NCBI GenBank assembly: GCA_001949185.1 | Contig: BDGG01000011.1 | Span: 703,552-767,551, forward strand | Source of the DNA: Ramazzottius varieornatus | Lineage: Eukaryota > Animalia > Tardigrada | Direction of reading: 5' to 3' | DNA: 64,000 nucleotides | Shown here: positions 419-64,000 of the stretch, piece by piece | Layout: each line of letters opens with the position of its first letter | How positions within the stretch are numbered: position 1 is the stretch's first letter | Program-made: the position numbers and the translations under genes | Notes under the pieces: model-generated | Databases searched by the model: none | What the model saw: the letters and a program-made list of their open reading frames with translations, nothing else | What the model was told of the DNA's origin: nothing

Positions 419-2125
419 ATGAAGCGCCGGTCGAGGGATAACCTGTTGGTATCGGTGGCGCTGCTGCTGACGTTGAGCTCCTTACTTCCCTTGTCGGAAG
501 GTGCTAGTCTGCTGAATGCTCTGGGCTCCAAAGAGTCTTTCCTCCTTCGCCTGTTGTATGGACCATCGTGGGCAGCCCTGACACATCTGCACAGCTTCCG
601 CATGAACTTTGTGGGCTTTCAGTGCGACAAAACGGAGGACTGCATAACTGGCCATTGTGCCGACGATGGCAAGAATGTCAAACGTTGTGTCTGTGCGCCG
701 GACGAGGTCGACCATCCCGTGGCCGTCATACGCGGCGTCCAGTTTGAATGGAAAATCTGCCTTAAAAGTAAGATTGGTTGGAAAGTCGGTCGAAACAACC
801 CGACCAAAACGTCTTCCCCAAGTGGCGCACGATTCCAGTCTTTTTGGTCGAAACCATGCGCCACTTGCAATAAAGTTTTTATCGAGTTGTTCCAAGTGGC
901 GCACGGTTCTAAATTATTGATCTGGAGCGTGCGTCACCTGGGGAAACAATCGTGTGGATGCTTTCTCAGGTGGCGCAGGCTGTCGGTCTCGTTGAACGAA
1001 AGTCTGTGCCACTTGGGACACAAATCTCCTTGAGCCCCGCCTGAAGGAATACGTCCCTTTCTTATCCTTCGCTGCTAACCATGGCTTTTCCCCATTTTGT
1101 AGAGCGTTCGTACGGACAAAAGTGTCTGGTAGACAAGCAGTGCTCGGCGAAGGCCGGCAACAGTTTCTGTGAGGGCGTGTCGGCGGCCAGTGCCGGACAG
1201 TGCGTCTGCGAGGATTACTTCAAGCCCATCAACATCAACGGAGTCCTGGCTTGTACACCCGGTAAGTGGACGACTATTACACCCGCCATTTCACGCTCTT
1301 GACACCGATTACAATACCAAGTGCTATAATATGTACAAGCTGGCTCAACTGGATCTCTTGACAGATCGCTTAGGCGGGCAGTGTGCTCAGGATGACGATT
1401 GCTCGGCAATTAAAATATTGAGCGACGAGGGAAGAGTTATTAACGTGCCAACCATCCATTCAGTCTGCCAACGCCCCGACAATGGGACGGACCAGAGCAC
1501 CCGCTGTACGTGTCCGCCGGGCTTCGAGAACTCCACAGACGGACTGGCCTGCCAAGGTAATTAAAACATACAATCTCACAAGACCCCACGGCCTTTGCTC
1601 TAACCTCCTTCTCATCCAGATATCAACGAGTGTGCTTCGCAATATCCGGACGGACCGTGTGCGGTGAATGGGCGAGACAACCCAGCGGTCCTGTGCGTCA
1701 ACCGACCTGGGTCCTACGAGTGTAAATGCCAGTACAAATTCGGTATCCAGAATGGTAATGGCGATCACGGCATTTGTAAGTGGGACGAGTACAACATCCT
1801 GTCCAACTTACAGCACAGAAGCCAATTTCAGGTCTTTCTTATCAAAACAGGTTGCGAAGCGGGCTTCTTTCCCTGCCGTTCGGGATCGCGGTGCTTCCGG
1901 CTAGAAGAGTTCTGTAATGGTGTGCCCGACTGTTTGGACGATTGTTCAGATGAGAAAATGTACTTTTGCAATTTCAACGACGTCTATCCGGCACCGGACT
2001 ACAGACTCTACCCTCAGTGAGTCGCTCCCCAATATATTCAAAATTGGCGCAAAGTTCTGAACTTGCTCTTTCGCAGGTGTTTGTTGGACAATGTCGCTCC
2101 ATTTACTTCAAACATCAGACAATAA
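419..2125 (+). CDS. Secreted cysteine-rich protein with EB/EGF-like modules, a calcium-binding EGF domain and an LDL-receptor class A domain (about 6 exons)
   Basis: ATG at 419 precedes a hydrophobic signal (LLVSVALLLTLSSLL). GT-AG spliced exons at ~419-767, 1103-1261, 1365-1556, 1620-1774, 1851-2015, 2077-2125. EGF_CA signature DINEC...CVNRPGSYECKC and LDLa signature CEAGFFPCRSGSRC...FCNGVPDCLDDCSDE. Confidence 0.75.
795..1030. repeat. Three-unit palindromic array in intron 1 of the EGF/LDLa gene
   Basis: Left arms at ~819, ~893 and ~967 (74-bp period), each followed by an inverted arm. Confidence 0.9.
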
Positions 2126-2344
2126 CGTTTGCTTGATCAGCTCTTTCAGAAGGCAAACGGAGTTTGTGATGAGAGGAGAAATCTTATGCATGGAGATCAA
2201 GTTTTTTTATCCCATCGCTCGGAATTTGAGCGAGCAGCGCTTGTGATCGCATGGCTTCATGGGCTGGTTTCTTCATCGAATAACCAGTGGGCAGGATCAA
2301 ATCATTCATCGCGATGTCTTATGTACGCTGCCTGCGTGTATTGC

Positions 2345-5062
2345 TCAAAGTCGTTTCTGCTTTTGTCTTTTTGCCGTAATGCCCATACCAGTAAAAGTAA
2401 TCAACATCTGAGTCCACGGAGTTACGAGTCTACCCAGTTGGCCTTTGGTTCTTGTCCAATCCAGATCCTTTAGTACCATTCCGACACCTCCTGCAAACGC
2501 CATAGCCACACCAGCAAGCTCCACGCTCGAGGCTTGTCGACCAGCGAAAACTCTCTCCCACCCTAAAAATAACTTGCACATTACACAGTCCTGGCTTATT
2601 AGCCAGCAGTAGGAGCTCGGCACACAAACTCGACAACACTGTATCGCAAATGGCGCGCATGTTCACTGTTATTAGCTGGAAGAGTGCGCCACTTGGGCAA
2701 GGAATAGTGTTGAGTTTTTCCAAGCGGCGCACGTCTTCAGCGCTATTTACCAGATGAGTGTGCCACTAGGAAGAAAGATATCGACGAGTTTCTTTGCTTA
2801 GCCTCCCACTTAATTACAGCCCGTTCCAGCCAAGTTGTCCCTCGCGAATTTTCACTACTGTTTCAAAAATTTAGATCCATGCGTTTCGCCCCATCCCAAC
2901 CCGTTTTCAACACTTCGACTTGTGCTCTGTATGATACAATTGGTTTGAGAGCATTCATGTAGAAGACCACTTTGAAAACCCATCTTGAAACAAGGTCGTT
3001 TTGACACGTCCACTCTGCTTGTTGCCGTAGAATAAAAATCTCAGTTCTCACTCCGTCAAAACAACAAAATTTCGTGTTCGCAGGTTGAAAACAGATTGTC
3101 GTAACAGTGCTTTCAAAGAAAAGTTCTCGTTAGGAATTCGAAAATGACGCGAGATGTCAAATTAAGAATTAGAATTGAAGTGTCACCCCAACCAACTGGC
3201 GCGCATGTTTTTGCGACAGGCAGAAAAACAGATGTGGGACTCTTCTAACCCACGATAGCTTTTCGGCCTTTCTTGTTGTCAAACGGTTCCAAATTGCCGA
3301 AGTAACGACAAAAATGTTTGACACAGGCAGAAACATTATTTGGTCAGAAGAAGCAAATTTCCGATCGAACGGGGACAACTTGGCTGGAACGGACTGAAGT
3401 TTCTGCAAAAACTTCCATAAAACTATCGTTATCTTACAATAGGCGCTTGGAATGATTAGAAGCATGTGGAGAGACGTGAAGGCTTGGGGTAGATGCACTA
3501 CTGCCGCGTTGACGATCGAGATCACCGCTAAAATATACAGATTTTCCTTCCGCGCCTTTTTGTTCTCTAAAAAAATAGTTTCGGTTCTTACACATTGCCA
3601 TTGTGGATGTAGTGATAAGTTGGCCCCATGGTAGACTGCGAACATCCCAGTATTCAATTCCTGTCCACTTGAGGTACATGACAAGTGGCCACATCAAGAG
3701 CACCATAAGGGAGGCAGCCAGCGAGACGTAGAAGTAAAGTCCAGCCAAACCGCCTCTTCCTCTAAATTTAGCTCTGAACGCTACCTGAACGAAACATTTC
3801 ACATTTCTCATTTCTAAAGAGAACTGGGGAAACCGCAAGTCTTACCTGCAGCGACGCAGTGAAAAGTCCACCAACTAGCATGACTAGAGCTTCCCGCCAG
3901 CGTGGGTTCATGTTTATCTCGACTAGGCAGAGCAAGGAGACTCCGGCGAGGTTAAGGATGGCGGGTGTCGGCAGCTGCAACAATGCAGCACTCCTACATG
4001 TACCGTTACCTAATGCTCCTAGTTTTGGTATTCGGGAGCACAGCAAACAGTCTTGGCACTATCGCTTTTTCAAATGGGCCACCATTTCACCCAATGAACA
4101 CTGAGGCGTGCGCCACTGGGGAAACTATCTCATGGAGTCTTTCAAGTGGTGCACGCTGCCGAGTAGTAACACTGGAAAATTGCGCCACTGGCGAGAATAA
4201 TATTGCATCGTTTGTTCGCGTTGTTCTGATTTACCTTGGCGCTTGAAAGACCGTTGCCAAAGACAAGAGTCGAAATAAGGTAGAGGAGAGGGATGCTGAT
4301 GGTAGAAAGGGCAGCGAGGACCCCGGGTTCCCGAGCAGCAAACATGGGGAGGAAGCTGAGCCACTGTGACCCGATCATCAAGGATACGCAGAATATCATG
4401 TCGCGCCAAAACTTCCTCGTGGGTCCTTGTGAGTCTCCATACAATTTCTCACCGTCTCTACGAGTATACCATGTTACAGACTTCGCCGAAGAAAGAAGCG
4501 CACGAGACGGATGGTTATTACCGTATTACGGCAGACAACGAGTCGCCTGCAGAAGCTTTATCGCCGCCAGGGAAAACTTTCCACCTCAAGAGGGCGTAAA
4601 TTGGGAAAACGAAAGCACGGAAGAGGCAACGGAACCATATGACGAAAGCTGGTGCGTAAAATGTTGGCGTAGCGGAACGCTTGACAACGTTGAAAAGGAA
4701 CCCTTGAAAGAGTGCGACAGAGACGGTGTAAACGCAACCGATCCCAAATTTCCAGGAACTCAGACTTTCCGTTTGCGGCTTCCTCCGACCTGTACAGGTA
4801 GATTTTTTCCGAGACGTGTCATTTATTTGACTGCATATGCATGCAACTGGGTAGCCTGCATACCTTCCTTGTTAAATATCGGTTTGTCAGAGCGTTTAAC
4901 GGGTTTCTCTTCCGACGTCGTAGATCTGCAAAAATGCATCACACAAACCCGCACAGTAGTGTCAGAGTCTTTACAGTGGACCAGCTACTTTATAGGCGAC
5001 AAGCACGCATGTTCTCACCTGTTGAGCTTTTTCGATCCTTTTCGCGAGTTTGGCATTTCCAT
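2345..5062 (-). CDS. SLC35F3/F4-like drug/metabolite (DMT/EamA) superfamily transporter, multi-exon
   Basis: Spliced minus-strand exons encode many TM helices. TFYAPAFVIWFRCLFRAFVFPIY and LMWPLVMYLKWTGIEYWDVRSLPWGQL resemble SLC35F3/F4 segments. Start inferred at MEMPNSRK (5062); stop at 2345. Confidence 0.7.
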
Positions 5063-5581
5063 GCCGGCTAGGCGCGGTCCGTTCCTCAAACGCGGTGTTT
5101 CAAGTGGATAATGTCATGGCGCACCTTCCCGATACTTTGCAAATGGTGGTGCCGCGATATTTGTCCAAGAACGGAGCGACAAGCTCTGCAAATATGGAGT
5201 CACTCTATTTAGACCTGCACCTCATGGCACATGCTTTCCTACTGTAAATCGTACTGTTGCGCATTACATCAGAAATTCATTGCTGGATTAACGACTTTAG
5301 AAATGACTGTCTGATTACGGATATGCTAACGTGCTCTCGAAATCGACTCACCTAGTTTGCCTCTAGGCGGCGCCAGCATGCTTTCTAACAGCTGTAGCCT
5401 GTTCGGCTTTTGTATCTCGAACTTTCATGATAACGATCCGTACCAAGAAACCGGTATTTGCAGCTTTATCTCCTGGTCTAATTTCTCAAGCTTTTTCTTC
5501 GGAAATTTTTGGCAGCTATATCTTATTTTAAGGCTGCTCAAATGTATCGACGCGTGATGGTGGATCTTGTTTTCTTAAAAG

Positions 5582-8133
5582 ATGCGTTATGAGGGTTTTC
5601 GGATAATTTTTCTTTGCATCTGCTTTTCGTTTGTGGTCGGGAAACCACCTTTGCAACTACCGAATATTGCCGTTGTTCTCGCGGATGACACAGTAAGGGA
5701 AACTTTTGCGAAAAAACACAGGTGGTGGTCCTGCAGCACACTATTTGACTTTCAAAGTGGCGCACACTTCTAGCCAGTAACTTTGAGCGCGTGCGCCACT
5801 CTGAAGACCCATCTTGTCGAGTTTTCCAAATGGCGCACGCTGTTAGCAATTGAAAGAGCTTGGGGAATTGACTTGGTCGAATTTTTTTCCGTGCTCCCAT
5901 TTGTATAATAATGGTACAGGGACATGCGGACATTGGCTATTCGGAAGGGAACCTGCAAGCATCCACCGGCTTTATTAACAAGTTGGCTTACGATGGCGTC
6001 ATTCTGGACTCGATGTATACCAACCCAATCTGCTCTCCCAGGTATCACGCGAACATGCCAAACCCTTAGCCTCACAATCAAAACTACGCACTTTATATTA
6101 TTATTATTATCATGTACCTCTTGTACAGCCGCGCCGCACTTCTTACCGGAAAGGACACCATCCACACCGGCATGCAAACGGATGCCATAGGTCCCGGACA
6201 GCCATGGGGTCTTCCTACTCACTTCAAGCTCCTGCCACAGTTCCTCAAAGACCTCGGGTACTACACGGCCCTTCTCGGAAAGGTACTGCCATCTGACCAT
6301 AGAGCAACCAGTTCACCGTCTCTGTTTTTCCGGATATCCAAGCATCAGTATGCGTTCGTATGCATTTGCAGTGGCATCTTGGATCGTTTACTCGCGCGCA
6401 CTGGCCCAGTATGTTTGCCTTTCTTCGCGTCCCGCCAAAAACAGGCAACTATAACAATGTTGCCGTTATTCTTATTTTATTTTTGGCCACGTGATGTACA
6501 ATGTGTAAGGATTACCGTGAGTCTTTCCAGTTGGGTGCGCGGGGAGCCAACAACGAATTTCAGCATGGCCGAGATTTCTACGAAAACGGAAGGAAGATTC
6601 CTGCCGACGTCACGAAAAACCACTTCCTCCCCGATCTGCTTGTTGAGAAAGCCGAACAGCTCATTCGCAATGCCGATCTAACAAGACCCTTTTACCTGCA
6701 GTTTGCGACGCCGCTCACCAGACTTTTCGACGATTACGGCAAAGGCGTCCAATACTCCATGTCCCGGTATTTGCAGAGAGCGCCGCTGAAATTCCTAAAC
6801 GACAGATGGCACAAGCGGAAACTGCAACTGGGTAAATTCAGTGTTCTTTGCATGATAGAATTTAATGTTGAACAACCGGCCACCTGGGAGGCCAGTAACG
6901 AAATGTACAAGCCAGTTATGTCAAGTGGCGCACGATTACAGCACATAGCATCAGGAACGTGCGTCGCTTGTGCGAATAATCTGATCGAGTTTTCCAAGTG
7001 GCGCATGCTAACAGTCAATGACACTAGAAACGTGCGCCACTTGAGATATCGTTCTTCCACGTTTGAGTTGCCGACCTCTCATTTACAGTAGAAAGGAAAA
7101 GTGTTTTGGAATTCCAGCCGCTCTGGTCACCTTGGACGATCACGTGAGACGCATCTACGAAGCCTTGTTACACAAGGGACCTGCTGTGCTGAGTAATACC
7201 ATCATTCTTTTTATGAACGACAATGGCGGTTCAGACATGACTGCTCCAAACAAAAACCACGTAAGACTACCATCCACTCAGTAATCTTTGCCGTTCCCAA
7301 CGTACAACACCCAACCTGCGGTAAATTTAAAGGTGAATCAGGCCAGCAATGGGCCGCTGCGGATGGGGAAACTGAGCTTGTTCGGAGGCGGTGTGCGAGT
7401 TCCCTGTTCCTTTGGTCCAACTTACTGAACAAACGTGGGTACATTGGCAAGCGTCTCATACATATGAGCGACTGGCTCCCCACGTTGTACGAAGCCGCTG
7501 GTGACCCCCGCGGTGATTTACGTCTTTTCAACGTCACTGGGCTCAGCCACTGGTCCAACTTCCAGGAAGGAACGGACCACCCAGTCCGCACAGAGCTCCT
7601 CAACAACATCGATCCCCTCAGTAATGTTTACGCCATGATTGACCAACAGCAGGGCAGAACGTACAAGTTAATTGGCGGGAACACGTACGGTCGAACCATT
7701 CCAACGTGGTAAGCACCGTAAATCATTGTGGGCAATATCATTGTAAGCTCGCTGTAGCTCTTAATCCCTCCAAGGCAACGTACTGAAGGGACTAGCGAGA
7801 AGAATCCTATGAAGAAATGGACGCCAACCTCAGTTGAGTGCCTGCACACTCCGGGAATCGAGACAACAGCCTGCATACCGTGGGTCGCCAATTGTCTCTA
7901 CGACTTGACCGCAGACCCATGCGAGCAGGCAAACATAGCTGCTATTGCTCCCTGGATCCTTTATCGGATGGAAAGGAAGCTGGCGGCGTACAACCAGACT
8001 GCGGTTTGCCCCGGAATTCAGGGTTTACGACCCGGCATCTGCGCCAGACAAGTGGGGTGGCTGGTGGGTACCTTGGCGTGATCCTGACCCTCATTTGGAC
8101 GAAGTACCTTATCGGCCTTTCGAGTCTCCGTAA
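5582..8133 (+). CDS. Arylsulfatase B/I/J-like sulfatase, multi-exon; possibly damaged (apparent +1 frameshift near 8005)
   Basis: Signal peptide, then PNIAVVLADD|GHADIG, the sulfatase signature CSPS|RAALLTG split by an intron, LKDLGYYTALLGK|WHLG, NTIILFMNDNGG, WPLRMGK..LFGG, HMSDWLPTL, CLYDLTADPCEQAN and a C-terminal DP...WGGWWVPW. Confidence 0.85.
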
Positions 8134-8221: not shown

Positions 8222-8378
8222 GTAACGATCCCAAGTGGCGCACGTTTCTGGTGCTGTAGGCTGGCGGGGCGCGCCACTTGGGAAAACGATCTTGTCGAGT
8301 GTTCCCAAGTAGCGCACACTCTCAGTATTACTGGCTAACAGCACGCGCCGCTGGGAAACCGATCTTGTAGAATTTGCG
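8222..8378. repeat. Two-unit palindromic array between the convergent sulfatase and cwo 3' ends
   Basis: Exact 12+25+12+25 geometry: CAAGTGGCGCAC-25-GCGCGCCACTTG-GGAAAACGATCTTGTCGAGTGTTCC-CAAGTAGCGCAC. Confidence 0.9.
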
Positions 8379-8788: not shown

Positions 8789-11700
8789 TCATGAACGCGA
8801 ATGGGACTGTGACAGGTTTAGTACGTGTGACGAAGTGGCCGATGCCGGTGCGGTGGAGGAGGTAGCGCTGCTAGGCGGCCCATGTATGATGGTCATCGGT
8901 CCGGCAATGACTGGTCCGCCATAGCCGTAATGCAGACCGTGATGGTGGGTGGTGTGGCCGTCTCGGGAGGAACTAGCGGCGATATTGAGGGAAGCCCGAC
9001 GTGGCATCAGGATGGCGTGACCACCGTTCATGTTGTTATGCACTTGGATATTACCTGCGGTTAGATTGGGGCCGGACATGGTGGTGTGGTAGGGCTGTAA
9101 CAGCGTGCTGCCACCATTACCACCCGCCACCGAAGTCGTGAAGGGTAAGACTGAGGGAAGAAGCAGCGCCGGCTGACCTGCTGCTGGCGACTGTTGGGCG
9201 TGGAAGAGAGGTCGCGGGAAAATGCTGGCCGGAGTCAGAGCAGAAGGAACTGTCAAGGTATTGCCGGAAGCGGCGCGCGTGCTGGCGCTGGCCGAGAAGT
9301 TGACGTTGATCGTTACTGGGTGACAGATGGCTGGCCCGCCTGTGAACGACATACTCGGTGGAACACCCGGCTTGATGTACTGAGAAGTTGTAAGATGGCG
9401 GCGCACGTTTCCGAAGTTTTCGGATGGAAGCCTGCGCCACTTGGGAAGAACAAACCTGTGGAGTTTACCCCGGTGGCGCAGTTTATCGGAGTTATTGGCT
9501 AGAAGCGTGCGCCACTGGAAAGAAGGATTTCGGACGTACCTTTGGTTGACTCTTGGTCAAACTCGATGAGGTGGACGTTGATGGAGGAAGGAACGTAGTA
9601 CGCGCCGGAGGAATGGAGAGCAAAGATAGGAACGGTGCCGGCCATCGGGGCTAAACCGGTAACGGGTGCCGGCTCGGAAGCCCGACGTTTGTGGCTGGCA
9701 CCAGCCGGCAGGGACTCGAAGGACCCTCCCATGTCGGAACAATCGTTGGAGCCGGAAGAGCGCGAGTCGGGACGACGCTTACCCATCAAACCACCGCGAC
9801 CCGTTTCCGAGTCGACTTCCACCTTGATGAAGTCTGGGTCGCAGCTGCCTCGTCGCACATCCGTGGCGAATCGTTCCTACAACAGACGGCAAGTTTATTC
9901 CGAGTCTGGCAGCAGATAAAGATTAGAATTCAGTCCGGAGCCAAGAGTCATTTATGTTCGTTTCTGCAAGAGCAGCCTGTCAAGTTTGTGCCCGGCACGG
10001 CTTTGACACGCATCGAATGGTTCTTAGGAAATGGCGGAAATTACGCCTTGACCTTGACAGGCAATTCTCGTAGGAAAAGGGCAGAATTCACTGGACCGCC
10101 GTGAAACTTCTCACCACCAATATTACCGACTCGATCGGAATTACCTTGATGGTACGCTTGAAGCTGTACGAGTTGGTGCTGGGGCTGGTGGAATCGCTCA
10201 GGTCTTTGGTGGAAGTAGAGATGGGTGATACATCACCGCTATCGAACATGGGCAACGTGGCTTCCGGCTCGGGAGTGATGGCTGTTTGGCCCTTGGTGTC
10301 GCTACTGGGACCACCATTGACCGGACGATAGTTTCTGCTCCAAGTATTGAAAGGACTCTGTAGCATTTCCCGCAGTTGACTGGACGAATGTGCGTCACCA
10401 GCGTGGAGTGTACTGGCACTGCCCGGTGTAGAGTTGGGGCTGTTGCAGCTATTGTGACTGCTGGTGCCGCTCTGCTGCAGCTCGGCTTCCGAATCGTAGT
10501 CGCTGGTAATGCGAATACCACCAATGTCCGACTGTGACAGGGCGCGCCCTCGATGACCACTGTTCTTGGGGGAAACAACCTGTCGGCTGCCTTCCTTGTC
10601 ATGCTGACGTCCTTCTTGCTCTTTTCGCAGTGTCGAACGGGACTCACTTTCTAGCGACCTGTCTCGCATGTGCTTCAGCGGGTTCAGTAGATCTCGCGGT
10701 AGGTGTTCTCGTAAATCTGCAAACAGCAAACGATGATTACAAAAAAGAATCCCAGCGGAATTTAGGCACACAAATCAAATCAGTTTTTTCAAGTGGCGCA
10801 CGCGTTTCGCTAACCGTAACGAAACCATGCGCCAGTTGGGACAGCAAAATTGCTGAGCTTTCAAATCGCGCACCCATTCGGCAAATAACATTGAGTACGT
10901 GCGCCACTTGATAGAAACGATCTTGTCAAGCCCGAGTGGCGTACGCTAACCGCTAATTGCACTGCTGACGTGCGCCACTTAGGAAGAACAATTACTCAAG
11001 AATCTATTGGTGTTCTGCTGTATACTTACCGATATCATGGCCCATTCGATCGATGGTATTCTGTGTATGGTTAATGAGACGCGCACAGATGCCTTCGCCG
11101 GCAAAAAACCCTTCGACATCGACCAAGTACTGTAGCACCTCGACAAAGCAGTCCTTGTAGCCGTCGGCATAGCTGCGACTAGTACTATGCTGCGTGGGAT
11201 CCTTCAAGTCCTGTTCGCCTTGTGGACTGTCGGGCGGACTCAGCTGCTCCACATCTATAAGCAGATCGAAACAAGTTTACTCTTTGGAAAGTTCTTTTTT
11301 CGAGAGGATAACTTGCTTTGGTATCGAAGAGGTAGCTTGCTCTGGATGTAGCGAATATGCTTGATGGCCATCTCGATAATTTCGGTCTTTTCGATCCTGC
11401 CACGCCCTTGCTGCAACAGTGCATAAAAACATCAGCCCCTTCTGGCCAACTCATCTCAGAATTAACTACGCCCATACCTTTCGAAGATACGAAGCAGGAA
11501 TGAGCCGACTAAGGTCTGCGAGACAGTTATTCATGCGGTCCCGGCGCCGTTTCTCGATTATGCGATGCGACATGGGATCCTGCAACATCGAAAAGCAGAA
11601 CGTTATTATCAATGATCCCAGGTTACTGATAGAATCCGCTACTCTAAGATACACTTGACACTGTACAACTATATCTGCGCCAGGCTGCGGCAGCCGGATA

Positions 11701-25528: not shown

Positions 25529-25985
25529 TTCTAAATTCTATGTATACAACTTCGTCCTGTCTATCGTGTCTCATCTGTGATTTTAGTCTGGATAAGTCTT
25601 TAACTTATTGAGAACTCGAAATGGGAGATTGAAAAACAAACTCGACAGGGCTTTTTCTAAGCGGCGTACGTTTCCAGTGTCACTGGATGGAGGCGTGCAC
25701 CACTTGGGAGCGATATTGTTGTACTAAGTGGCGCACTGTTGTGCGTTATTGCCTGTAAACGTGCGCCACATGATGAATGAAACTGCCGAGTTCGCTTGTT
25801 TAGGTCCCAAGTGAGCCAGAACGGTTTTCTACGTCACTTTTTCATTTCTCGGTGGTGAAATGTCTGTTTTGATTTTGGGCTCTAATATTCCGAAATATAC
25901 ATGTAATCAGACAAGGATGCAAAAAGTACAAAATTAATTATCTCAGAAGGACTGTGAAGAAGGAAGTGTTCAAAGGTACGAAAGT

Positions 25986-26916: not shown

Positions 26917-27047
26917 ACTATCGTGGAAGCTGGTTCGCTGGAGAGGGATGGTTCTTGAACGGGTAATTAGCACAGACGACGGTGTTGAAGAAGTTTGAGT
27001 AAACAGTAAGTGATCGCCGACGATGTCCAAACAGATGAGGTGGGAAG

Positions 27048-27055
27048 TTTATATA
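27048..27055 (-). promoter_or_regulatory. TATA box of the Gly/Tyr-rich protein gene
   Basis: TATATAAA on the minus strand about 130 bp upstream of the ATG at 26916. Confidence 0.5.
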
Positions 27056-41100: not shown

Positions 41101-41744
41101 AGAAAGACGTTACACACGTTTTTTGCTGCCAAAGACCATTAAACGTTGAGCATGGCAATGAAACGACGAGTTTTAACGGGCTGGCTGTCGGAGGATGGGG
41201 GAGGAAAGAGCTTGGCGATGCGCAGTGAACGGCGTCATGACTTGAATCCACTCGATGACAGATTGTTCCCTCCGTTTATATATTCTGCTATCGGCCCTTC
41301 CGGCCAAGCTTCACCGACGTCTCTCATACTAACACCATCCGACACATAATCGATCCAACGGAAACCTTTTCCTCAAGGATATCTACGTAATTGATTTTGT
41401 GAATGTTACATAGCTAAAGATATGTACCTTTTGACTATGGAAAACGTGGAAGCTGGACAGAGTAATTCGATAAGACGGTTTTCCCAAGTGGCGCACTTTG
41501 CTATCCTTGTTGGCTGGAAAAGTGCATCACTTGTAGAAGCAACCTTGCCGAGTTGTGCCAAGTGGCGCACTTTTACAATGTGAGTGGCCGGAAAGATACG
41601 CCGTTTAAAAATGGTGGATGGTAACTTCTATTTGCCACGGTACCATTTGATCGAATGGGCTTGTTTCCAGACTCTGGAGTACTTGGATGAAAGTTATTGC
41701 GCCGGGAGGAATGCGAATACAAAGAATACGGCTAGTATGACGCG

Positions 41745-53729: not shown

Positions 53730-53940
53730 GCAGATCGTTTTTCACAGTGGCGCACGCGTCCCTCCGAAAACCTGCGCCACTTGGGAAAATAGTCCTGTTG
53801 AGTGTTGCAAGTGGTGCTCGATTCCAGCTATCACCACTCACAGTTTGCGCCACTTGGGAAGACAGTCTTGTCGAGTGTTTTCAGTGGCGCACGTTTCCAG
53901 TTAGTATCAATGGAAGCGTGCGCCACTTGGGAGATCAAGC
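53730..53940. repeat. Three-unit palindromic array between the convergent p190RhoGAP and RhoGEF2 3' ends
   Basis: Three arm pairs; the first loop is shortened. Confidence 0.85.
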
Positions 53941-54280: not shown

Positions 54281-57200
54281 CTACAAGTGCTGGACTTGTT
54301 CCAGCGGACTGACATTGCCCACAACGTTCTCCGCCACTTCCTCCTTGCCTTCGGGTTCTTTAGGCGCATCTGCTTTCACACTGACCACCACTTCGTCACC
54401 GTCAAGGGGAACAGGTGTTGGCTGACTTACCACTTCCACTTGTTCCTCTTGGGTCATTTCTTCTTCCAGAGTGGAGCCGGAGGAGGTTGGGCGAGTGGTG
54501 GTATCTTCGTTGGACGAGGCTCGCGTTTCGGCCCGAAGCGAATCCAGCTCGTCCTTGGTCACTCGCAGCTGCCAGGATAGGCGGTCCTTCTCGTGCTCCT
54601 GTTCAGCCACCATGCGAAGAAGGGTGGTCAGTTGTCGGTGGAGGTGTCCAACGACGGGCTGCAGATCCTCGGCGGCGATCAGTGGGCGCTGACTGTGCGT
54701 TTGCACAGCCGAGTCCACTGTCGACGAGGACGTTGAAGGAGCATGGTCGACCTGGTCGATGGTGGTCGTGACCGAGAAGCTGTCCAGGCGTTGCCGTTGA
54801 ACGATCAATTCTTCTTCCTGGCTGACCGTCAGCGAGTCTTTGACTAGCCTGGTCAGCTGGGCGATGTTCTGCATCAGATGATGCATGACGCTCTTGACGC
54901 TTCGCCGACTCTGCTGTACTGCTTCCACTTCTTCGTCTTCATCGTCCAGGTTAGACGACGGACTGTCGACGGGGAAACCTAAAATACGAGAGACTAACCT
55001 GGACTTTTGTTCCAGTGCTTCTTCGAGCATGTCATCTCGACGCTTCAGCTCCTGCATGGGAGAGAAAATTAAGTGGGCGTCATCCATGACACAGGTGGCT
55101 TCTGTGACGATGATGTCGGCTGGTGTTAACAGCTGTACTTCCTCTTCCTCATCATCTTCATCGTCTTCAACGTCGCTAGGCTCTCTTTCTGTCCATGGAT
55201 GCTGCGGTCGAAGCCCACTTAAAGGGTCCAGGGCACCACCCTGTAGCATAACCTGAGGGTCCAAGGCACCGGACTGCGTGAAGCTCAAAGGGTCCACAGC
55301 ACCAGGCTTGCCGCCACCAACCGCGAGATCCAGGGGTGGAGCTAACTGCCCAGGGACAGCCAGCACGGATCCGACGGTGGAGGGAGTGGCCGTTACCGGG
55401 ATGACTTCCGGTATGGATTCGTAGCAGTTGGTGTTGCGGCTGACAGCGGCCAGGATGTAGCGCTTCCACAAATTCTTTTCGGTGGTGGAGTTGGCCACCA
55501 GCTCGTACATTTGAGCACCGTTGTCGGTGGAGAGAAAGAGGAAGAAGGCTTTGGGATCGGTGGCCACGTCGCGGACCGACAGGCCGTCCAGTGTCAGGAC
55601 AGGTGCCCAAGAACGGCTGGTGAAGCTCTCGCTGCGCTTGTTCTCGTTGATGCCAGCTACAGGGGGAGTGTGGAACTTGAGGAGAAGCTTGTCGTCTTGC
55701 TTGGTGACCAATAGCAGGATCTTGTTGAGAAGGATGACGTGTAGGTCGACCGTCTTGGTCTTGCTCAAGCGCCACGTCAGGTCGCCATCGTGCAGCAATC
55801 GGTATTGTGACAAGTCCAAACTCTGCAATAGGGTAATGATTAAAAATTTACCTCCAGTGTCATGTACCATGAAGAGAGTACGTATGATTTCGATTCACTG
55901 ATTGGTTTTCTTGACAGAGAAGGACGCAGCTGTGGGAAATTACTATTTCGACAAACGCTGGACAAATTGTGCCCTTTTTCTACGAAATAAAGTGAACGTC
56001 TCAAGGCCGTGCCCGGCGCAGACTTGATAAGTCTTGATCGTAGAAAAAGGGCAAACGTACGCAGCGCATAAACGAGCTCACGCCGACTGGGCCGAGGTGT
56101 TTCTTACCCTGTGGTCCAGAGCCAGTTTGTGTTGGGACTTGATGAAGGAAGTCATGTCGATGCGATCCTGCAGTTCTCGTAGACGGTTCTTGTTGTTTGT
56201 TTCGGAGATGGCTTGGTTGACGTAGTCCAAGGTCGTTCGACAAGCTGTCAGCGCGTCTTGAAGCCTCTGGTACTCAATCTTCTCTTCGTCCGTCTCATCT
56301 GAAGAAAAACACCTCGAATTTAGATCAAATTATTCCTATTTTTAAAACCACATTTCAGTCTTTTGAGAGCTCGGCCTTCAGATTCGATAAAATTGCTTTT
56401 CAAAGTGGCGCATGTCTGCGGTGTTACTGGCTAACACCGTGCGCCGCCTGGGAAAGCGATCCTGTCGAGCTTTCGATTGTCCAAGTCTCATTCGACAGTC
56501 TCATTCGACAGTCCCATTTGTTTCCACGTACTGGGGGTGTATTTGAGCAGGCTCTCCAACAAGAGCGGATACTTGGTGAGCCTCTGCATGCCGGTGGGAA
56601 TGATGTCTTTCAGCTGCAGTCGGCGACAAAGCGGGTTGGCCGCTGCTTCGTGCAGGAACTGAACCAGTCGGCCATTCTTGTGTTGACTATTCTTCAGGGC
56701 TTCCAGGCTGGCTGTTTGGTTGTGACAGAAGGCCGCGGCGGCAGTGCGGAAGGTGGAGCCGTTATCGCCGGCAAACCTGTTGAGCAGGATATCACCCACA
56801 CTGCCGATCAACCCTTGAGAACGCTTGAGGACTTTCATCTGACGATTCAGCTCGGAATGCAGCGTCGTCATCTCTTCCAGGTTGGCGAAGATCTGCGCGA
56901 TAAGCTCGTCGGGAAGGAGCTTCTCTTTTAGCATTGGCTGGTAGAAGACTTTACACAAAACCTGTCGAAAAAAAGAACGTCAAAAATATTCCGCAGCTGG
57001 GCGTACTAGCTAAAAAAGACTCCTCTCCCGAATTTGGGGTACGCTTTCGGGGAGCTGGTAGAATGCACGAGCCACTTAAAAAGCAACTTGTCAAGTTTGT
57101 CCGAGTGGCGCATAAACTCGAAGCTAGTAGCTAGAAACGTGCGCCACTTGGAATATCCGACAAGATTTTCCTCCCAAGTGGCGCCCATGTTCGAAGTTAC

Positions 57201-60200
57201 TGGCTGCAAGTATGCGCCACTTGGAGGAACAATCCTGTCGAATTTCTCCAAGAGCTACCATGTCGAGTTGGGCTGGAGTCGAGAAGAGAACCATACCTTT
57301 AGATTGCGAACATGGGTTTGTTCAGTGTGAAAGAGTTCAGCCAGAACTTCTTGGCGCTTCTTCTGTTGGGAAGTCAACCCCTGAACGGTGGCCGGTTCGA
57401 CGGAAGCTTGCCAAGAGGGAATGTGTTCCGGATCAGCTTCAAAGTCTGAATCGTCATCAGCAATGTCCATGGTGAAATGCAGGCTTCCGCTGTGGCTGGT
57501 GGACTGTGACAGCGACGACGAAGACATACCGATACCTGCAAGCACCCAATGTCCACATGACAGCGAAGTTCATGCACAGTTTTTACCGGACATACCTAGG
57601 TCGCCGCTGCTAGTTTCTCCGTTATCGTTACTTTCGCCGGAGCGATGGAAGTGTGCCGGGTCGGATTTCTTCCTGACACCGGCTCCTTTGGCCAAGTTGC
57701 TCTTGCGGTTGTGCGTCGACTTGAGTGATTCCGAGCGGCCAACGACGGTCAGTGGAGGCGCTTTAGACTGTTGGGCGGAAGTCGTAGCGGGATCTGGTGG
57801 TGGACCCATCTCGCCCACTTTGCCCGACTCGAACTGGTGGACCACCTTGTTGACGTACGAACCGACAGGTGCGTGACTTCCTTCCAGCTGTTCCGTCGAA
57901 CCCAGATGATCAGCTTTGTCGTCCTCTTCCTTCTCGTCGTGAGACTTTCGGGCATTCGATACTGCAAACGAACAAGATGGCGTTGACTACTTTGAGACCA
58001 GTGTCCTTTTCGGGCATGAAGAAAACGTCGAAAGAAAGACTGGGCACACCGGGGGCAAGACTCTTTTCCCAAGTGGCGCGTGCATAAACCCGAAAACACT
58101 GCAGCAGTGCGCCACTGGAAAAGCATCTTCGCGAACTTGATTTTCCAAGGGGCGCACGTCTTCAGTCTTATTGCCTGATAACGTGCGCCACTTGGCAAGA
58201 AAGATCTCGTCGAGTAGATGCTTGCCTAAGGTCCCCAAAGTCAAATAGATCATGATTGTACTAGCGAGGATTTGCATATCAATGAGAGGAAAGAGACATC
58301 AAGTCAAGTGGTGGTAAGACTTACTGGCAGTTGGGCTGTTGTTTGAGCGTTTGCGGCCAAAGAGGCCGAAAGAGTCCATAGAGATGAAGGAGCGTCGTAG
58401 TTCCTTCTTGTCTCCCACACAAGCCTCCTCAATGTTCTTCACACAAGCCCGGTGAGCCGTGTACTCACAGGCTATACACTGGTAACCTTGAGGAGCCACT
58501 CCCCACATGACATCGCCACATTGCGTGCAGTGGAGGATGGTTGTCGACAACGCCACCGCTGCAAACTGATGTCCGCTCACCGTGATGTTCTTCTTCCGAT
58601 CCTTCAGCTTGAACCTATAAAAAACCACAGATGCGCCGACATTTCCTCGAAGGACAGAAGACCTGATAAATTCTGCACGCTGTTCTGTTTTGAAGCTCGG
58701 CGAAGAAACTCGACAAGACTGTCTTTCCAAAGTGGCGCACACCTTCAGCCAACAACACCGAAGACGTGCGTCGCTTGGGAAAACGTCCTAACCAAGTCAG
58801 ATACGCCAACACAGAACAAAATTCTTCGAGACCACCTACACACAATTCCGTTCAGTCTGGCGACATGATTTTCTAAAACTAATTCAGGTTCAAATCAAGG
58901 CATCAAAAGTGGAAACGGCAAAATTCCGACCTGTATCCAACCTTTTTTCAAAGTGCACGTTGAACCGCAATGGAAGGCAAAGCTCAAAAATTCTAGGCTG
59001 TCGGTCACTGGCAAAATGGCATCGGATGCGCACTAATAAACTTTGCGACAGATATCTTCTGTACAAGCACGTTCTGCGTACTCTAGGGGAGAAACGTGTT
59101 TACAACGGTGCAAATTATGATGGAAGAGACCGCTCGATGCTGTCGGGTGCCGGCGGCGAAGAAGCGCGGCGATCATTTGACACTACGAGAGTGTTATACG
59201 AGACGGCTTACTCAGTCAAGCATAGCTTGGGACATTCTTGGCAAGCCACATCCCAAAATCTCGTACACAAGTTCACTGCACCAGAAATCAGCCCGCAGGA
59301 ATAATTAACACTGTCGGCCTTGTCAACTCCTCAGCACAACTAATACCGCCATCACATCCCGCGGGATTTGCTCTAAAGTAAGCCCACTTGATTCATGAAT
59401 AGAAAGCCCTTGAAGGAGGCGGGAAGCTTGCGTGTCTAATAGCCGCGTTATAAAAGGACGGACAAAAAACACTCAACATGTACTCTGATGAAACTTTGAT
59501 TGCAAAGCCATTATTATCGAAATACTTCTAGGAAGACACGCCACCCCTTCCATACGTCACACACGGACAACGTTCGGTAGTTTAAGATTCCACATAGCCT
59601 CTCAAGTTTCTTGCTCGAGTACTTCCTTACTTTTTGCTCTGCTTTTCGCTATACGAGTTTGAGCTTTCTGGACTTTTTGTGGAGAGAAAGTAGACTTACT
59701 TGGACTTGTCTTTTTGGAGAAGCAAGGGCCACTTGTCGACCAAGTAGGTCCCATCAGCTCTAGAGACGGCCTTAATGCCGTTGAATTTAAGAAAGGTAGC
59801 CAAGGCACACGCCAGCGCCGCCTCTCGGTCACAGCGATTCTCCGGCTCTTCTGGCGCTTTCATATCCGTCAAAGCTTCCAAGTGTGGTGCCAACAAGGTC
59901 TCTGCCACTTCTCGGGACTGGTCGGCAGAGTTGACTGCTTTGGCCAGCTCCGCTTCACTCGGTCCATACAGTCCTACACAACAAGCCTCGCTGGAAACTG
60001 AATAGAACAAGACCGCTTTTCCAAGTGGCGCACGCTTCCGGCTAGTAACGCTGGCAGCATGCGCCACTTGAAAGAAGGAAACTCGGCAAGATGGTTACTT
60101 CAAAGTGGCGCATGTTGTCAGCCAGTAACACAGGGACCTTGCGCCAGTTGGGAAAACGATCTTGTCGGGTTTCTTTGCCGAGCTCTAAACTGATGTGAAA

Positions 60201-62710
60201 GAGTACCTCCAAGGTTGGCTTTGAGTTTGTCTCTTAGCTCCTTTAGACGTAACTGAGCAGCGTCCAGTGCAAATGCACGAACTTTGGTAAAGACGTCGCG
60301 TAGAGCTTCTTCTCGTTCAGGTTTGGCCAAGACGACGTCGATAGCATGAATCAAGCTGTTACTGCTGCCGCACTGAACACTGCTACCGAAAATATCCAGT
60401 GGTGAGTCCGGAACGAGAAAGGTCGAATGCAGCTCCACAGCCCATCGCTGCATTTCCTTAAAGTTTCCTGCGTGAAGAAGAAGTTTCTCATCTCGAGTAC
60501 TGACATACAGCAAGTATCGGCAGTTGTGTACAGTACCTTTAGTGTAATGGTCTGTCAAGACATGGAAGAGTACGGGTGCAATATCCAGGCTCTTTTCTTG
60601 AAGCAGGAAGTTGATAAAGACGGCCAAGTGCGGCAAGTGTTTGTTGATTAAGAAATAAAAGTTGGAGAAGGGACCGTAAGAGTCAAGTTGTTGCAAGACC
60701 GACGATCCCGGTTGTAGAACGTCGCCGGAAAGATTTTGCAACCTCACAGATCCAACGGTCGCTCCTACAACAGACGAATTATAATTTTTGCAGTGGGAAT
60801 GTCAGGCAGGTATAAATGAAGCCCAAGCAAGCGACTCCACGAGAAGCTTTTGCCAAGCGACGCACGCCACCGGCTAGTAACTGCGAAAACGTCGCCACCT
60901 GGGAAAACGATCTTATCGAATTTTGCAAGTGGCGCACGCTTCGACCAGTCACACAGAAAGCATGCGCCACGTGATGAAACAACTTATCCACTTTGTTTAC
61001 CGAACTCAGATGTAAGAAAGGGTCGCAGAAAAAAGCCCGTACCTGCTAAGGCACTGAGAGAACCGGACTTTGTGACAGCATTGTGGTTGATAGGACGGAA
61101 GGTGGCAGGTTCGGGATAAGGCGGCGGCGGCGTACCGGAAGAAGGAGCTCCGACTTCCGTCACGTCGTGCAACGAGGCATTCCGGTACCTGGCAGACTGG
61201 TCTGACCGCTTCTTGACGGGCAGCGCCGGCGGCTGACTGTCAGGAATACTATTTTTGCGATGAACGCTAACAGCACTACTGGAACGGTTTAGGGAGGACG
61301 ACGAAGTGGGAGGCTGCTCCAACAGTGGCGCTAAAAATCAAAAACAGACTTCTGAGTGTTAACAGGAGGAAGCATTCAGGCGCTGTAAATACCTTGGTTA
61401 TTGGACGTGAGCGTCATGCGAGCCACACCGAGGTGCATGGCTTCGGGGTTGGAGCGACGACGATTGAGGCCGGCGGAAGCGGCAGCGCGCATTGACCGAG
61501 TGGCCATGTCCGAAGCCTCGTGAAAGCGAGGAATACGCTCGATGGGAGGCGGCGTGGGAGGCATTTCACGTAGCGTCGTACTATCACCTAAAATTCAAAC
61601 ACACAAAAAGTTACCAGACTGGTAAAAAATCATTGCAAGCTCCACGCTGTCCAGAGCCTCATTAATTCCTCACAAGTCTCTTTCCAAAAGTGTAACAATT
61701 ACCATAATATTCACATTATCCAGCAGCTGTCACTTGCTTGACAAGCTATTGCTGTCAACTACACGGAAAACCCACAAATAAGAAAGGTGAGGGCTCCTCT
61801 CACCACCAACACCACCGATCGGAAACACCGACCGGAAGCAAAAAACATGGACGCACGGCAAACACACTAGGCAAGATCATTTCAAGTCGCGCACGTCTTC
61901 AGCCAACCATACTGAAAACGTGCGCCACTTAGGAAAAACGATCCAGACGCGTTTGTTCAAGTGGCGCACGCTTTCAGTTTTATTGGCTGGAAGCGTGCGG
62001 CACTAGCGAAAAAACGGTCCTGCCATGTCTCTTTGCCAAGGTCCCATTCATCACGTACCTCGATTACCGTCGCCTCTTTGATACAAGACATTCTCCAGGG
62101 CTTCGGGATAGCTTCTTGAAGAAGGTAGGGAGTCGGATCTGCTTTTGCTTTCGGTTAGTTCAGCTATCCTCTCGTCTTCGGCACTGAACCTGTCCGATAA
62201 ATTCACAGCGGGAAGACTGACTTTTCGTCGAACCGGGTTTTCCATCCCATTGTTCTCATACATGCGTTCACCATTGCCGGAAGGACGAGCGTTTTCAGGG
62301 ACCAAGCTGTGGGCAGTTCGGACCACCGTCATGGCTACACAGGGTTGTGACTTGATCAGCTCCACAACTTCAAAGTGATTCTTGTCCGTCACCAGCTGAT
62401 TGTTGACTTTGATGATGCGATCACCTGGCCGCAGCCCCACCGAGTCGGCTGGACCATTCTCCTTGACAGTGTCCACAAAGACGGGGTTGTCACCGTAGAC
62501 TTTCAAGCCGTAGCCTTGCTCATCCCGACGGAAGACGACGTAACGCTTTTCCGCTGACGAAGAAGTCAGATGGTCCACTCGTGATGCAGTGGCCGCTCCT
62601 GTCACCGTCACCGTGGGCGAAGGGAACTTGTGATGGTTACTGCTGCCTTTCTTCTTTTCTCGTTCACCAGAGGGACGCTTTGGCACATCCATGCTTGATA
62701 CCGTCGCCAT
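54281..62710 (-). CDS. RhoGEF2: RhoGEF2 / ARHGEF11-12 family RGS-RhoGEF (PDZ, RGS-like, C1, DH, PH)
   Basis: PDZ RRDEQGYGLKVYGDNPVFVDTVKENGPADSVGLRPGDRIIKVN; RGSL HLAVFINFLL...ELHSTFL; C1 GHQF...HCTQCGDVMWGVAPQGYQCIAC...HRAC; DH KKRQEVLAELFHTEQTHVRNLK...CRRLQLKDIIPTGMQRLTKYPLL; PH LLHDGDLTWR...YELVANS. Confidence 0.93.
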
Positions 62711-64000
62711 GAATCACCTGCCATCCATTGATCTATCTTCCCGCATTCAAATTCCACAAGAACTCAGTCTCGTACATTATCCATACACTCCTAGGGCTCC
62801 CGTGATTATACTGCAATCGACCAGGCTGACGAGATCTTTTCAAGTGAAGTTTGGGCTGTAAGTAAGTCAGAAAGGCGACATGAGATTTTCGTTCCAGACA
62901 TATTTTCTAAACGATAGGGTGAAATTCGGTTGGCCGGAAAAGTCACGTGACGCGCCGCCCGCATGGCGCCGCCACATCGAAACAACATGCACTACTGGCA
63001 TGCACCACAATACCACGCCCACTCCTATTGCGTCAATCTAAAGGAATTCAAAGGCGCAGCACGCACGGTGACTTACCTTACTGTCAGGAAGTGTCTTTCC
63101 CTCCGGGCAGCAGTCTCCGTCTATCGCGCGATAAAACTCGTCAACGTTGACTTACCTGGATTTATGATTATGGTTATGAATTACAGTATCACACTTTGAG
63201 CATACAGACACGAGGAGGGCGATTATGCACCGTCAAAACTGTTGGGTAATAAACATTGAGCACTGAGCAGGTTGATCATCCACGCAACACAAAGCTTGTC
63301 TTTTGCACCTTCCCTTGCTTTCCACTTGACTCACCCACCGTCGTGTTGACTTTAAGGATTTGCGGAACGGAAGGCGATCTGGCTCTGTGCAGCGCAAAAC
63401 TCGCTTCTTGAACCGTACAAATTCGCTCCGCTAGAAATTCCACCGCTACGCAATTTGTCAACGGTGAGAGTGCCTAGCAAGTCCGTGCCAGGAGCCCTCC
63501 GATTTGCAGGATGGGCCCTTCACAATGTGACCTCATCGGCTCTGCCCGGTAAAAGCATTCCCGTACTCTTTTGCGACTCGACATTCTCTCGATCTACGCT
63601 CATCTTGGTTCACTTTCTCCGTGGATACTCTTCGAGTCTTGCTGGCCATTATGGATATACCTTCCGTATATTGACAAGCCACCATTCGATATCTGTGAGA
63701 GTACACACAATCTGGACACGATGCAGAACAACGATCAGTAAGTACTTGTTGAACCCAACACTACTTGGACCATCGTTTACTTTGAACTGGAGCTTCGGTG
63801 AGATACAGCCTATTTTCAGGGACTTGGTCTGGGCTGATGAGCTTGAGGAACGATTAGGTAGGTTGCAGACGGAGGGATTTGGGACCTCGGTGAACAAACT
63901 CGACAGACTGTTTTCCCAAGTGGCGCACGTTGCCAGCATTATTAGCTGAATGCGTACGCCACTTGGAAGACAGACTTTGTCGAGTTTGTTAGTCGAGATT

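Follow-up and report, generated by a model that had tools for sequence, protein, structure and literature searches.

Why does a 12-bp motif, CAAGTGGCGCAC, recur in alternating orientation throughout a 64-kb stretch of tardigrade DNA (the window), and are its copies still in use? The original prediction was that the motif forms a fixed 37/74-bp lattice occupied by a chromosomal protein. With up to one mismatch, the motif (termed the arm) has 97 matches in the window, where 0.34 are expected and the largest count in shuffled sequence was 2, and its repetition is therefore real. With up to two mismatches there are 162 matches in 56 clusters, 47 of which carry 2–6 arms in strictly alternating orientation.

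Arrangement of arms in the window

The family spans positions 790–64000, with 47 arrays of 2–6 arms and about nine single arms, and takes up about 12% of the window. Measured from first arm to last arm, the arrays reside at 819–1015, 2647–2769, 4108–4191, 5754–5838, 6922–7043, 8232–8317, 9432–9518, 10790–10981, 13157–13240, 14126–14323, 15312–15400, 16226–16353, 17660–17744, 18494–18544, 20106–20278, 21024–21143, 22453–22538, 23278–23361, 23741–23789, 24740–24820, 25695–25772, 26392–26514, 28081–28194, 28960–29008, 29788–29835, 30704–30752, 36645–36693, 41485–41570, 42350–42397, 43531–43620, 44322–44370, 45293–45378, 46251–46299, 47224–47346, 48706–48826, 50173–50372, 51407–51491, 52590–52703, 53744–53929, 56402–56450, 57102–57223, 58070–58194, 58729–58777, 60022–60150, 60854–60973, 61883–62006 and 63917–63965. 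Two further hairpins, near 33711 and 34718, are found at three mismatches.

In 53 of 66 pairs, a forward arm and the following reverse arm stand 37 bp apart. The linker from a reverse arm to the next forward arm is not constant, ranging from 30 to 43 bp with a mode of 36. Strict detection gives 58 one-unit, 23 two-unit and 2 three-unit arrays, and Tandem Repeats Finder reports a single array in the window, the three-hairpin array at 53744–53929 (2.2 copies, period 73, 77% matches). A long satellite or head-to-tail lattice is ruled out by these linkers and by the 1–3 units per site. Thus, the predicted lattice survives only as an inverted pair held at 37 bp. Given the fixed pair, the variable linker and the short arrays, the 37/74 pitch is the geometry of a single palindromic unit and its tandem copy.

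The consensus sequences of the loop (GCTTCCAG..CTGAAAAC) and of the linker (GGAAAAC..GTTTTCC) are both palindromic, which bears out the description of each as an imperfect palindrome. The loop centre, CCAATAACA, is asymmetric and is found in both orientations among copies, so that mirrored copies look unrelated and inflate the apparent variability of the loop. The loop is less conserved than the arms, but the spacer variability noted originally is partly an artefact of these mirrored orientations. Within multi-unit arrays, the loops share one orientation in 20 of 25 cases.

Anatomy and abundance of the element

The arms form the core of a palindromic MITE-like element, non-autonomous and no longer mobile, and we assign this relic identity with high confidence. 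Read from the outside inward, each half of the element consists of GG and a terminal motif, GAGCTCGGCAAAC, then a block with two CTCGRCAA repeats, a T-run and the 12-bp arm; a 25-nt loop separates the two arms. The sequence GG-GAGCTCGGCAAAC reads inward at both ends and constitutes terminal inverted repeats. Distances between terminal motifs fall into discrete size classes of 118–119, 190–196 (about 192) and 264–280 bp. The one-unit element is 118–119 bp, and longer copies carry one or two extra 73–74-bp units (hairpin plus linker) as direct tandem repeats, an internal duplication that alone produces the 37/74-bp alternation. In all size classes the element is too short for any gene.

Whole copies fold as one hairpin. 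Among one-unit copies, the full-length example at 28925–29043 has 119 bp between terminal motifs (hairpin fold z −2.5), and that at 42316–42433 measures 118 bp and retains an identifiable terminal motif at either end (DNA fold −28.2 kcal/mol, z −4.9). Two-unit copies are found at 47187–47381 (195 bp with four arms and two loops that point the same way) and at 61851–62043 (193 bp), and the longest size class is represented at 17626–17905 (280 bp between terminal motifs). The six-arm cluster at 50173–50372 has two oppositely oriented linkers, which points to a pair of copies, side by side or one within the other, and not to a plain tandem array.

Terminal inverted repeats, discrete sizes and about 10^4 dispersed copies agree with the MITE derivation proposed at the outset. 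The flanks of the element show an AT-rich, roughly palindromic preference, with TA 6–7 nt outside GAGCTC. The best direct-repeat register for a target-site duplication reached z ~3.2 among 125 tests on 20 copies, which is not significant, the copies being too old; for an 8-bp duplication (k=8) no register exceeded z 1.8, at low power. Both the arms and the terminal motif are absent from 12 pogo (DDE_1) and 12 Harbinger (DDE_Tnp_4) loci, which were searched for an autonomous partner with the same ends. As neither a target-site duplication nor, at these loci, such a partner was found, the evidence for a MITE lies in its structure and copy number.

There are 371 perfect 12+25+12 hairpins in the genome, on contigs C1–C9 and beyond, and one single-variant form of the hairpin has 139 further matches. 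Twenty random 10-kb genome samples gave a density of 0.18 arrays per kb, and we estimate that there are roughly 10,000 arrays genome-wide. The arm is also the top repeated 10-mer in a random 200-kb genome sample, and the family is the commonest repeat in the genome sequence sampled (264 kb in total). Transcript assemblies collapse into chimeric contigs at arms.

Slow decay of the paired boxes

The family is old and has a star-like history, with about 31% divergence at ordinary positions; one copy compared with the genome is 78–85% identical to its closest other copies, which also speaks for great age. The key comparison is based on 38 copies picked by a terminal 13-mer only, a sampling that is independent of the arms. 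In these copies identity is 0.85 and 0.88 in the two arms, 0.71 in the outer block and 0.64 in the loop; in the indel-free copies it is 0.87 and 0.88 in the arms versus 0.69 and 0.69 outside them. The divergence is thus not uniform (12–15% in the arms versus about 30–31% elsewhere in the element), and the 11–12-bp arm boxes have decayed 2.5–3 times more slowly than neighbouring columns. Of 37 copies, 33 retain the arm-to-arm gap and 20 the gap between terminus and arm (Fisher p=0.0016). The claim that the arms and their 25-nt gap are better kept than the rest therefore holds once detection bias is removed. Retention of the CpG in the arm is by itself uninformative. No protection of the termini is seen (identity 0.65 over 131 ends), and no hypermutation signature was found in the element.

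Arms and spacing that decay this slowly under arm-independent sampling fit a dimeric, sequence-specific DNA-binding protein, and the slower decay hints that thousands of protein-binding sites may still be in use. We lean towards an ancient relic MITE in which constraint on the paired boxes persists, probably through such a dimeric protein. The prediction of a domesticated MITE is in this respect sustained as to origin and as to paired arms suited to a dimer, while the binding itself is inferred. Taken separately, present-day constraint exerted through protein binding has roughly even chances of being correct. Selection on about 20,000–30,000 dispersed sites is a demanding claim, and this counts against the explanation that we favour.

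The strongest alternative is an ordinary dead MITE with no present-day function, in which the boxes look protected through history or through slower mutation of those 12 bases. Many sources might have shared intact transposase-binding sites, or old copies with boxes intact by chance might have been remobilised. In MITE families, ends and binding sites are commonly reported to be better kept than internal sequence. The arm variants are ordinary independent transitions, the sample is small (n=38 copies), and the 78–85% identity of one copy to its best non-self genome matches would also suit siblings of a late remobilisation. However, loop diversity shows no subfamily structure, as its pairwise SD is 2.52 versus 2.45 ± 0.10 in column-shuffled data (z about 0.75), whereas simulated coalescent lineages gave an SD of about 4, with z never below 4.9 in 15 runs. 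A remobilisation filter also predicts many leftovers with decayed arms, but at most 3 of the 38 terminal-anchored copies look like such a second class. Moreover, the termini, which a transposase also needs, are unprotected, and beyond the arms there is no better retention of either G/C or A/T consensus positions. We judge a functionless relic to be possible but on balance doubtful.

That the element is kept for its hairpin, as an RNA stem looping out the insertion for short-intron splicing, as a feed for small RNAs or as a DNA cruciform, is very unlikely. Copies retain a better fold than shuffled sequence (z −2.5 to −6.2) and are found in introns, nearer the 5′ splice site. However, at no stem position does pairing between mirrored bases depart from the product of the column frequencies, and 9 compensatory double changes were observed in the arms versus 11.2 expected. 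In 25 hairpins whose gene strand is known, the sense strand carries 22 wobble-compatible changes versus 21 of the mirror class, so that neither covariation nor an RNA-strand bias was found, and the loop stem and outer stem decay freely.

We regard as highly improbable the fixed, nucleosome-phased 37/74-bp lattice, bound by a CTCF-like zinc-finger protein and acting as insulator, condensin loader, pairing site or holocentric kinetochore seed. The protection of the boxes and of their spacing would suit it, as would the Mb-scale enrichment of hairpins in the distal thirds of the largest scaffolds. Nevertheless, linkers vary, each site has 1–3 units, no array spans two nucleosome lengths, and sites lie inside introns of ordinary genes. 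The proposed link to nucleosome size is not supported, nor is the identity of the motif as a CTCF site or E-box, and roles of the motif involving CTCF, condensin, CENP-A or the kinetochore, insulation or pairing are unsupported.

Elements within introns

RNA contigs define ten GT..AG introns in part of a TRAPPC8/Trs85-like gene (19509–25499, forward strand), whose spliced form is one open frame over 4.1 kb. Six of the ten contain the element. Intron 1 (20012–20339, 328 nt) contains the array 20106–20278, and intron 2 (21011–21234, 224 nt) the array 21024–21143, its 5′ splice site, GTAAGCTCG, adjoining a truncated element end. In intron 5 (22345–22598, 254 nt; array 22416–22538) the element begins about 40 nt past the 5′ splice site. 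Intron 6 (23208–23437, 230 nt) contains the array 23241–23361, intron 7 (23723–23868, 146 nt) a one-unit copy at 23741–23789 with about 50 nt remaining before the 3′ splice site, and intron 9 (24696–24924, 229 nt) the array 24740–24820. All six are on the forward strand. Introns with the element measure 146–328 nt and those without it 54–206 nt. Eighteen other arrays sit between coding calls on the same strand. Intronic elements sit nearer the 5′ than the 3′ splice site.

Introners are likewise small DNA elements that dominate many introns, but that this element generated its host introns is scarcely credible: although it occupies most of six introns, and in two the 5′ splice site GTAAG adjoins a truncated element end resembling GGGAGCTCG, splice sites lie outside it (by 15–95 nt on the 5′ side in 4 of 6 introns and 20–50 nt on the 3′ side in 6 of 6), its removal leaves 50–110 nt, the normal size of element-free introns in the same gene, and tardigrades go unmentioned in a broad survey whose introners came from only two groups of animals (10.1101/2022.06.06.494994).

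Relation to known systems

Palindromic MITEs such as Stowaway and Tourist, and human MADE1 from Hsmar1, are similarly short, non-coding and almost wholly palindromic, with terminal inverted repeats and thousands of dispersed, often intronic copies. Their transposase-binding sites lie within the inverted repeats. The tardigrade element differs in that it is best kept at an internal box 37 nt from its end, its termini are not kept, and it grows by internal 73–74-bp tandem units. In reports on primate SETMAR, the DNA-binding domain of a domesticated transposase continues to occupy the inverted-repeat ends of the dead Hsmar1/MADE1 family across the genome (PMC8327481, PMC9062482, PMC6326780), and on that account the mechanism is of the same kind as that proposed for the tardigrade boxes. 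There the protein is known and binding is experimental, whereas here the case consists of slower box decay and one P-type transposase-like locus. As expected of sites in such a network, the tardigrade arms do lose their sequence in situ at a lower rate than the rest of the element.

P elements and the MITE BuT5 carry verified THAP sites, TAAGTGGA and TAAGTGTA, inverted and tens of bases inside each end (PMC3698922). Compared with TAAGTGGA (TAAGTGKA type), the tardigrade box CAAGTGGC agrees at 6 of 8 positions, AAGTGG among them, a resemblance only; its termini are unlike those of P elements, and the 8-bp duplication gave no signal, at low power. The genome has a single P-type transposase-like locus (G000:C11:1441856-1442540) and at least ten THAP loci, all of them candidates for encoding a protein that binds the boxes. 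Bacterial REP/BIME sequences are also short imperfect palindromes of alternating orientation, with short linkers of few length classes, in small non-coding clusters. They are prokaryotic and mobilised by RAYT (HUH) transposases, and the analogy is architectural.

Origin and possible use of the boxes

The constrained-relic reading suggests the following history. A single ancient burst would have left roughly 10,000 arrays, which survive in short introns and other non-coding DNA and lengthen the introns that they occupy. Ordinary positions would then have drifted by about 31%, with the hairpin as such not maintained, while the inverted 11–12-bp boxes and their 25-nt gap decayed 2.5–3 times more slowly. 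The boxes may originally have been the binding sites of the element's transposase dimer and may still be occupied by a dimeric protein that recognises specific sequence, perhaps a domesticated transposase relative, being kept by purifying selection or by protection linked to binding. More tentatively, the 20,000–30,000 boxes might form a living genome-wide network of paired sites, 25 nt apart, that would bind a dimeric protein of THAP or P type, perhaps derived from a transposase, the sites being selected in introns, concentrated in distal chromosome domains and serving chromosome organisation or domain-wide gene regulation.

The family is of an ordinary kind, except for its slow-decaying paired boxes 25 bp apart, and it accounts for the length of many introns and the shortness of others. 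If the slow decay does not reflect selection, the family is a useful warning against reading function into conserved motifs of old palindromic repeats until the copies have been sampled independently of the arms and aligned with regard to orientation. If it does, protein-binding sites of fixed geometry that were brought in by a transposon would number in the tens of thousands in a compact animal genome and would be concentrated distally on its chromosomes. The family would then offer a directly testable example of how chromosomal or regulatory infrastructure can arise from a mobile element, here in an animal whose DNA protection and repair are under study.

Alternating boxes form a hairpin of fixed length

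The 12-mer CAAGTGGCGCAC, here called the arm or box, has 97 matches across the 64-kb window when one mismatch is permitted, compared with 0.34 matches (maximum 2) in the dinucleotide-preserving shuffles from which the expected count was taken. Allowing a second mismatch raises the number of arms to 162, grouped into 56 clusters, and strict alternation of arm orientation is seen in 47 of these clusters, which hold two to six arms each. The recurring, alternating motif that had been proposed from inspection of the sequence is therefore confirmed. The original prediction also placed the arms on a fixed 37/74-bp lattice, which does not hold. Of the 66 distances measured from a forward arm to the reverse arm that follows it, 53 are exactly 37 bp, whereas the reverse-to-forward distances vary between 30 and 43 bp (mode 36). 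As only the former distance is fixed, the fixed object is a 49-bp hairpin (12 + 25 + 12), and the arm pitch of ∼74 bp is approximate only. A lattice, nucleosome or CTCF reading of the arms is not supported.

When the clusters were aligned together with their flanks, the arms proved to be the core of a longer palindrome. From the outside inwards, each half of the element comprises GG, the terminal motif GAGCTCGGCAAAC, an outer block, a T-run (GTTTTCC) and the arm, where the block between terminal motif and T-run contains two direct CTCGRCAA repeats. In the 25-nt loop, short inverted ends, GCTTCCAG and CTGAAAAC, flank an asymmetric centre, CCAATAACA. Measured from terminal motif to terminal motif, copies come in discrete sizes of 118–119, 190–196 and 264–280 bp, corresponding to one, two or three units of 73–74 bp, and they still form a single long hairpin (fold z −2.5 to −6.2). 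In 20 of 25 cases the loops of an array share their orientation, which marks the arrays as one oriented unit repeated directly in tandem. Recent local tandem duplication is rejected, as loops within one array differ at 11.0 of 25 positions compared with 11.6 between arrays. Loop orientation is free relative to that of the linker separating hairpins, so that mirrored copies seem to have unrelated loop centres, and this is why the loop had earlier seemed hypervariable. At window positions 56484–56518, a 13-bp unit, AGTCTCATTCGAC, is repeated 2.7 times and directly adjoins an element end.

Genomic distribution and intronic locations

Searches of the genome (a eukaryotic assembly of 55,842,812 bases in 200 contigs) recovered 371 perfect 12 + 25 + 12 hairpins and 139 hairpins of one single-variant form. 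The arm is the top repeated 10-mer also in twenty random 10-kb samples, where its density averages 0.34 per kb (range 0–1.3), compared with 1.52 per kb in the window. Extrapolation yields roughly 10,000 arrays and 20,000–30,000 recognisable arms genome-wide, with a large error because arm density is so uneven. Element density is very uneven at the megabase scale as well, and among the sites listed there is crowding into the outer thirds of the largest scaffolds. By successive thirds, the listed hairpin sites number 12, 3 and 15 on contig C2 and 2, 2 and 16 on contig C3, and the listed perfect hairpins on contig C1 number 16, 5 and 29. The largest scaffolds, at 9.0–9.3 Mb, may be whole chromosomes. 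No Rfam family was found in the window, the family and its motif are described in no paper that we found, and two metagenome scans gave zero matches in one case and one chance match, in a bacterial contig of 65% GC, in the other.

The window, which is C11:703552–767551 of this assembly, has coding sequence for TRAPPC8/Trs85 and PH_16 domains. Introns of the TRAPPC8-like gene (19509–25499, plus strand) were defined by RNA-derived contigs from four runs, placed on positions 19,500–25,499. The gene has ten GT..AG introns, and its spliced form is one open frame over 4.1 kb. Six introns, 146–328 nt in length, carry one array each, and the four array-free introns measure 54, 87, 115 and 206 nt. Elements usually lie 15–95 nt from the 5′ splice site and 20–50 nt from the 3′ site, and an element-bearing intron without its element would be 50–110 nt long. 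With the splice sites outside the element and a short intron left over, these copies are insertions into pre-existing short introns, and a reading as introners is rejected. On a codon-usage map of the window, 18 further arrays fall between coding segments of the same strand and no array falls inside a coding call; the exon caller behind the map is crude and lacks the sensitivity to classify 25 of the 47 arrays. The clustered, alternating palindromes are like bacterial BIMEs in architecture only; a bacterial REP/BIME reading is rejected given the few long open reading frames in the window and the eukaryotic TRAPPC8 and PH_16 domains.

Several other observations concern this region. In the 206-nt intron counted as element-free (21751–21956) there are short stretches similar to the outer block (GCTCGACACAAA); either a copy too decayed to be detected or a different family may be present. 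RNA assemblies across 22514–24824 show chimeric joints and loose ends at intronic arms, running on into other element copies; retained-intron fragments of many loci collapse at the element in transcriptome assemblies. Contigs from the public RNA runs X9 and X17 share 30 exonic positions at which they depart from the window, in ∼4.1 kb (∼0.7%; 19500–25499), whereas those from runs X1 and X2 are identical to it. X9 and X17 carry the same organism label, and the shared differences indicate a second strain or lineage in the public data. The PH_16 domain is N-terminal in a single 529-aa open frame on the minus strand (54281–55870), whose product has two homologues: a protein of 490 aa, 70% identical, in an ENA assembly and a second, 37% identical, in a Logan assembly. 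Among named proteins, its nearest relative is a Rho guanine nucleotide exchange factor from a vertebrate, over 24% of its length.

An old MITE family with slowly decaying boxes

The element represents an old MITE family, undescribed but of an ordinary kind, with the structure by which MITEs are defined, target-site duplication and autonomous partner aside. Its flanks show an AT-rich, roughly palindromic preference and, in these old and diverged copies, no significant direct repeat; a test for a 4-bp target-site duplication did not confirm one. Neither arms nor terminal motifs were present at 12 pogo and 12 Harbinger loci of the same genome, and a search of the genome for Tc1 DDE_3 returned nothing at E ≤ 1e-25. 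Pogo-type DDE_1 and Harbinger DDE_Tnp_4 matches number at least 150 and 38, respectively, in the assembly, and many of them lie in stop-free open frames of 250–470 aa; these families may have been active recently, and their ends are not shared with the palindromic element.

The best genome-wide matches of one well-preserved copy are only 78–85% identical, so the element has had no recent activity, and its ordinary columns are ∼31% diverged from the consensus. For a sample independent of the arms, 38 copies were picked by the terminal 13-mer alone and aligned globally; 26 of these are indel-free. Identity to the consensus is 0.85 and 0.88 for the two arms (0.87 and 0.88 in the indel-free subset), compared with 0.71 (0.69) for the outer block and 0.64 (0.69 when oriented) for the loop, and the arms have accumulated ∼0.14 substitutions per site vs ∼0.40 elsewhere. 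The arm-to-arm gap is kept in 33 of 37 copies and the terminus-to-arm distance in 20 of 37 (Fisher p = 0.0016). Thus the earlier claim that arms and their 25-nt gap are better kept than the remainder withstands arm-independent sampling: decay of the paired boxes and of their spacing is about threefold slower than that of the rest of the element. The termini are unprotected, with a terminal motif identity of only 0.65 over 131 ends in copies sampled by their arms. One copy, near 33800–33882, keeps 18 of 22 outer-block positions and has no recognisable arms at the expected place. It adjoins the hairpin at 33711–33759 and is the only clear case of lost boxes among the 38 terminal-anchored copies.

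Explanations for the slower decay

A lower local mutation rate at the boxes, or a history that our models do not capture, could possibly lie behind these differences. Five explanations of arm conservation were tested. If source copies kept their transposase-binding sites through rounds of turnover and the rest of the element drifted, subfamily structure would be expected. Pairwise distances among 91 loops reveal none (SD 2.52, compared with 2.45 ± 0.10 after column shuffling); simulation of coalescent lineages at the observed divergences gave an SD of ∼4 with z ≥ 4.9 in 15 of 15 runs, whereas a star model gave z near 0. Nor does membership of one array make units more alike (11.0 differences in 25 within arrays vs 11.6 between them), and such lineage selection is rejected. 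Late remobilisation of old copies whose boxes were intact by chance predicts many leftovers with decayed arms, but these number at most three among the 38 terminal-anchored copies, and this scenario is likewise rejected.

Selection for the hairpin itself fails because pairing of mirrored positions equals the expectation under independence, with 9 compensatory doubles vs 11.2 expected, and because wobble-compatible changes in 25 hairpins of known gene strand (22 vs 21) show no sense-strand bias. Hypermutation of the non-arm parts by an ADAR-, APOBEC- or RIP-like process is rejected by a balanced, ordinary substitution spectrum, with ts/tv of 1.3 in loops and 1.5–1.9 in arms. Base composition is dismissed as a cause, since G/C and A/T consensus positions outside the arms are equally kept.

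A candidate role for protein binding

From this small sample, we infer that what remains after the five tests is sequence-specific constraint, in place, on the inverted box pair at its fixed distance. Inverted boxes so spaced are what a dimeric DNA-binding protein would be expected to leave. Verified THAP sites of the P element, TAAGTGGA and TAAGTGTA, are subterminal and inverted (PMC3698922); the element box CAAGTGGC, likewise subterminal and inverted, matches them at 6 of 8 positions, a resemblance only. The genome contains exactly one P-type transposase-like locus, outside the window on the same contig (C11:1441856–1442540, plus strand), with PF12017 (1441856–1442023, E 3.6e-6) and PF21787 (1442118–1442540, E 2.7e-24) both in open frame on that strand. 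Its single-copy state makes it a candidate domesticated transposase.

The proposed mechanism is like that of the SETMAR/Hsmar1-end network of primates, for which binding is demonstrated; here it is proposed from sequence. A dimeric protein would continue to bind the paired boxes, keeping both sequence and spacing, and such continued binding is probably the best explanation for the slower decay of the boxes.
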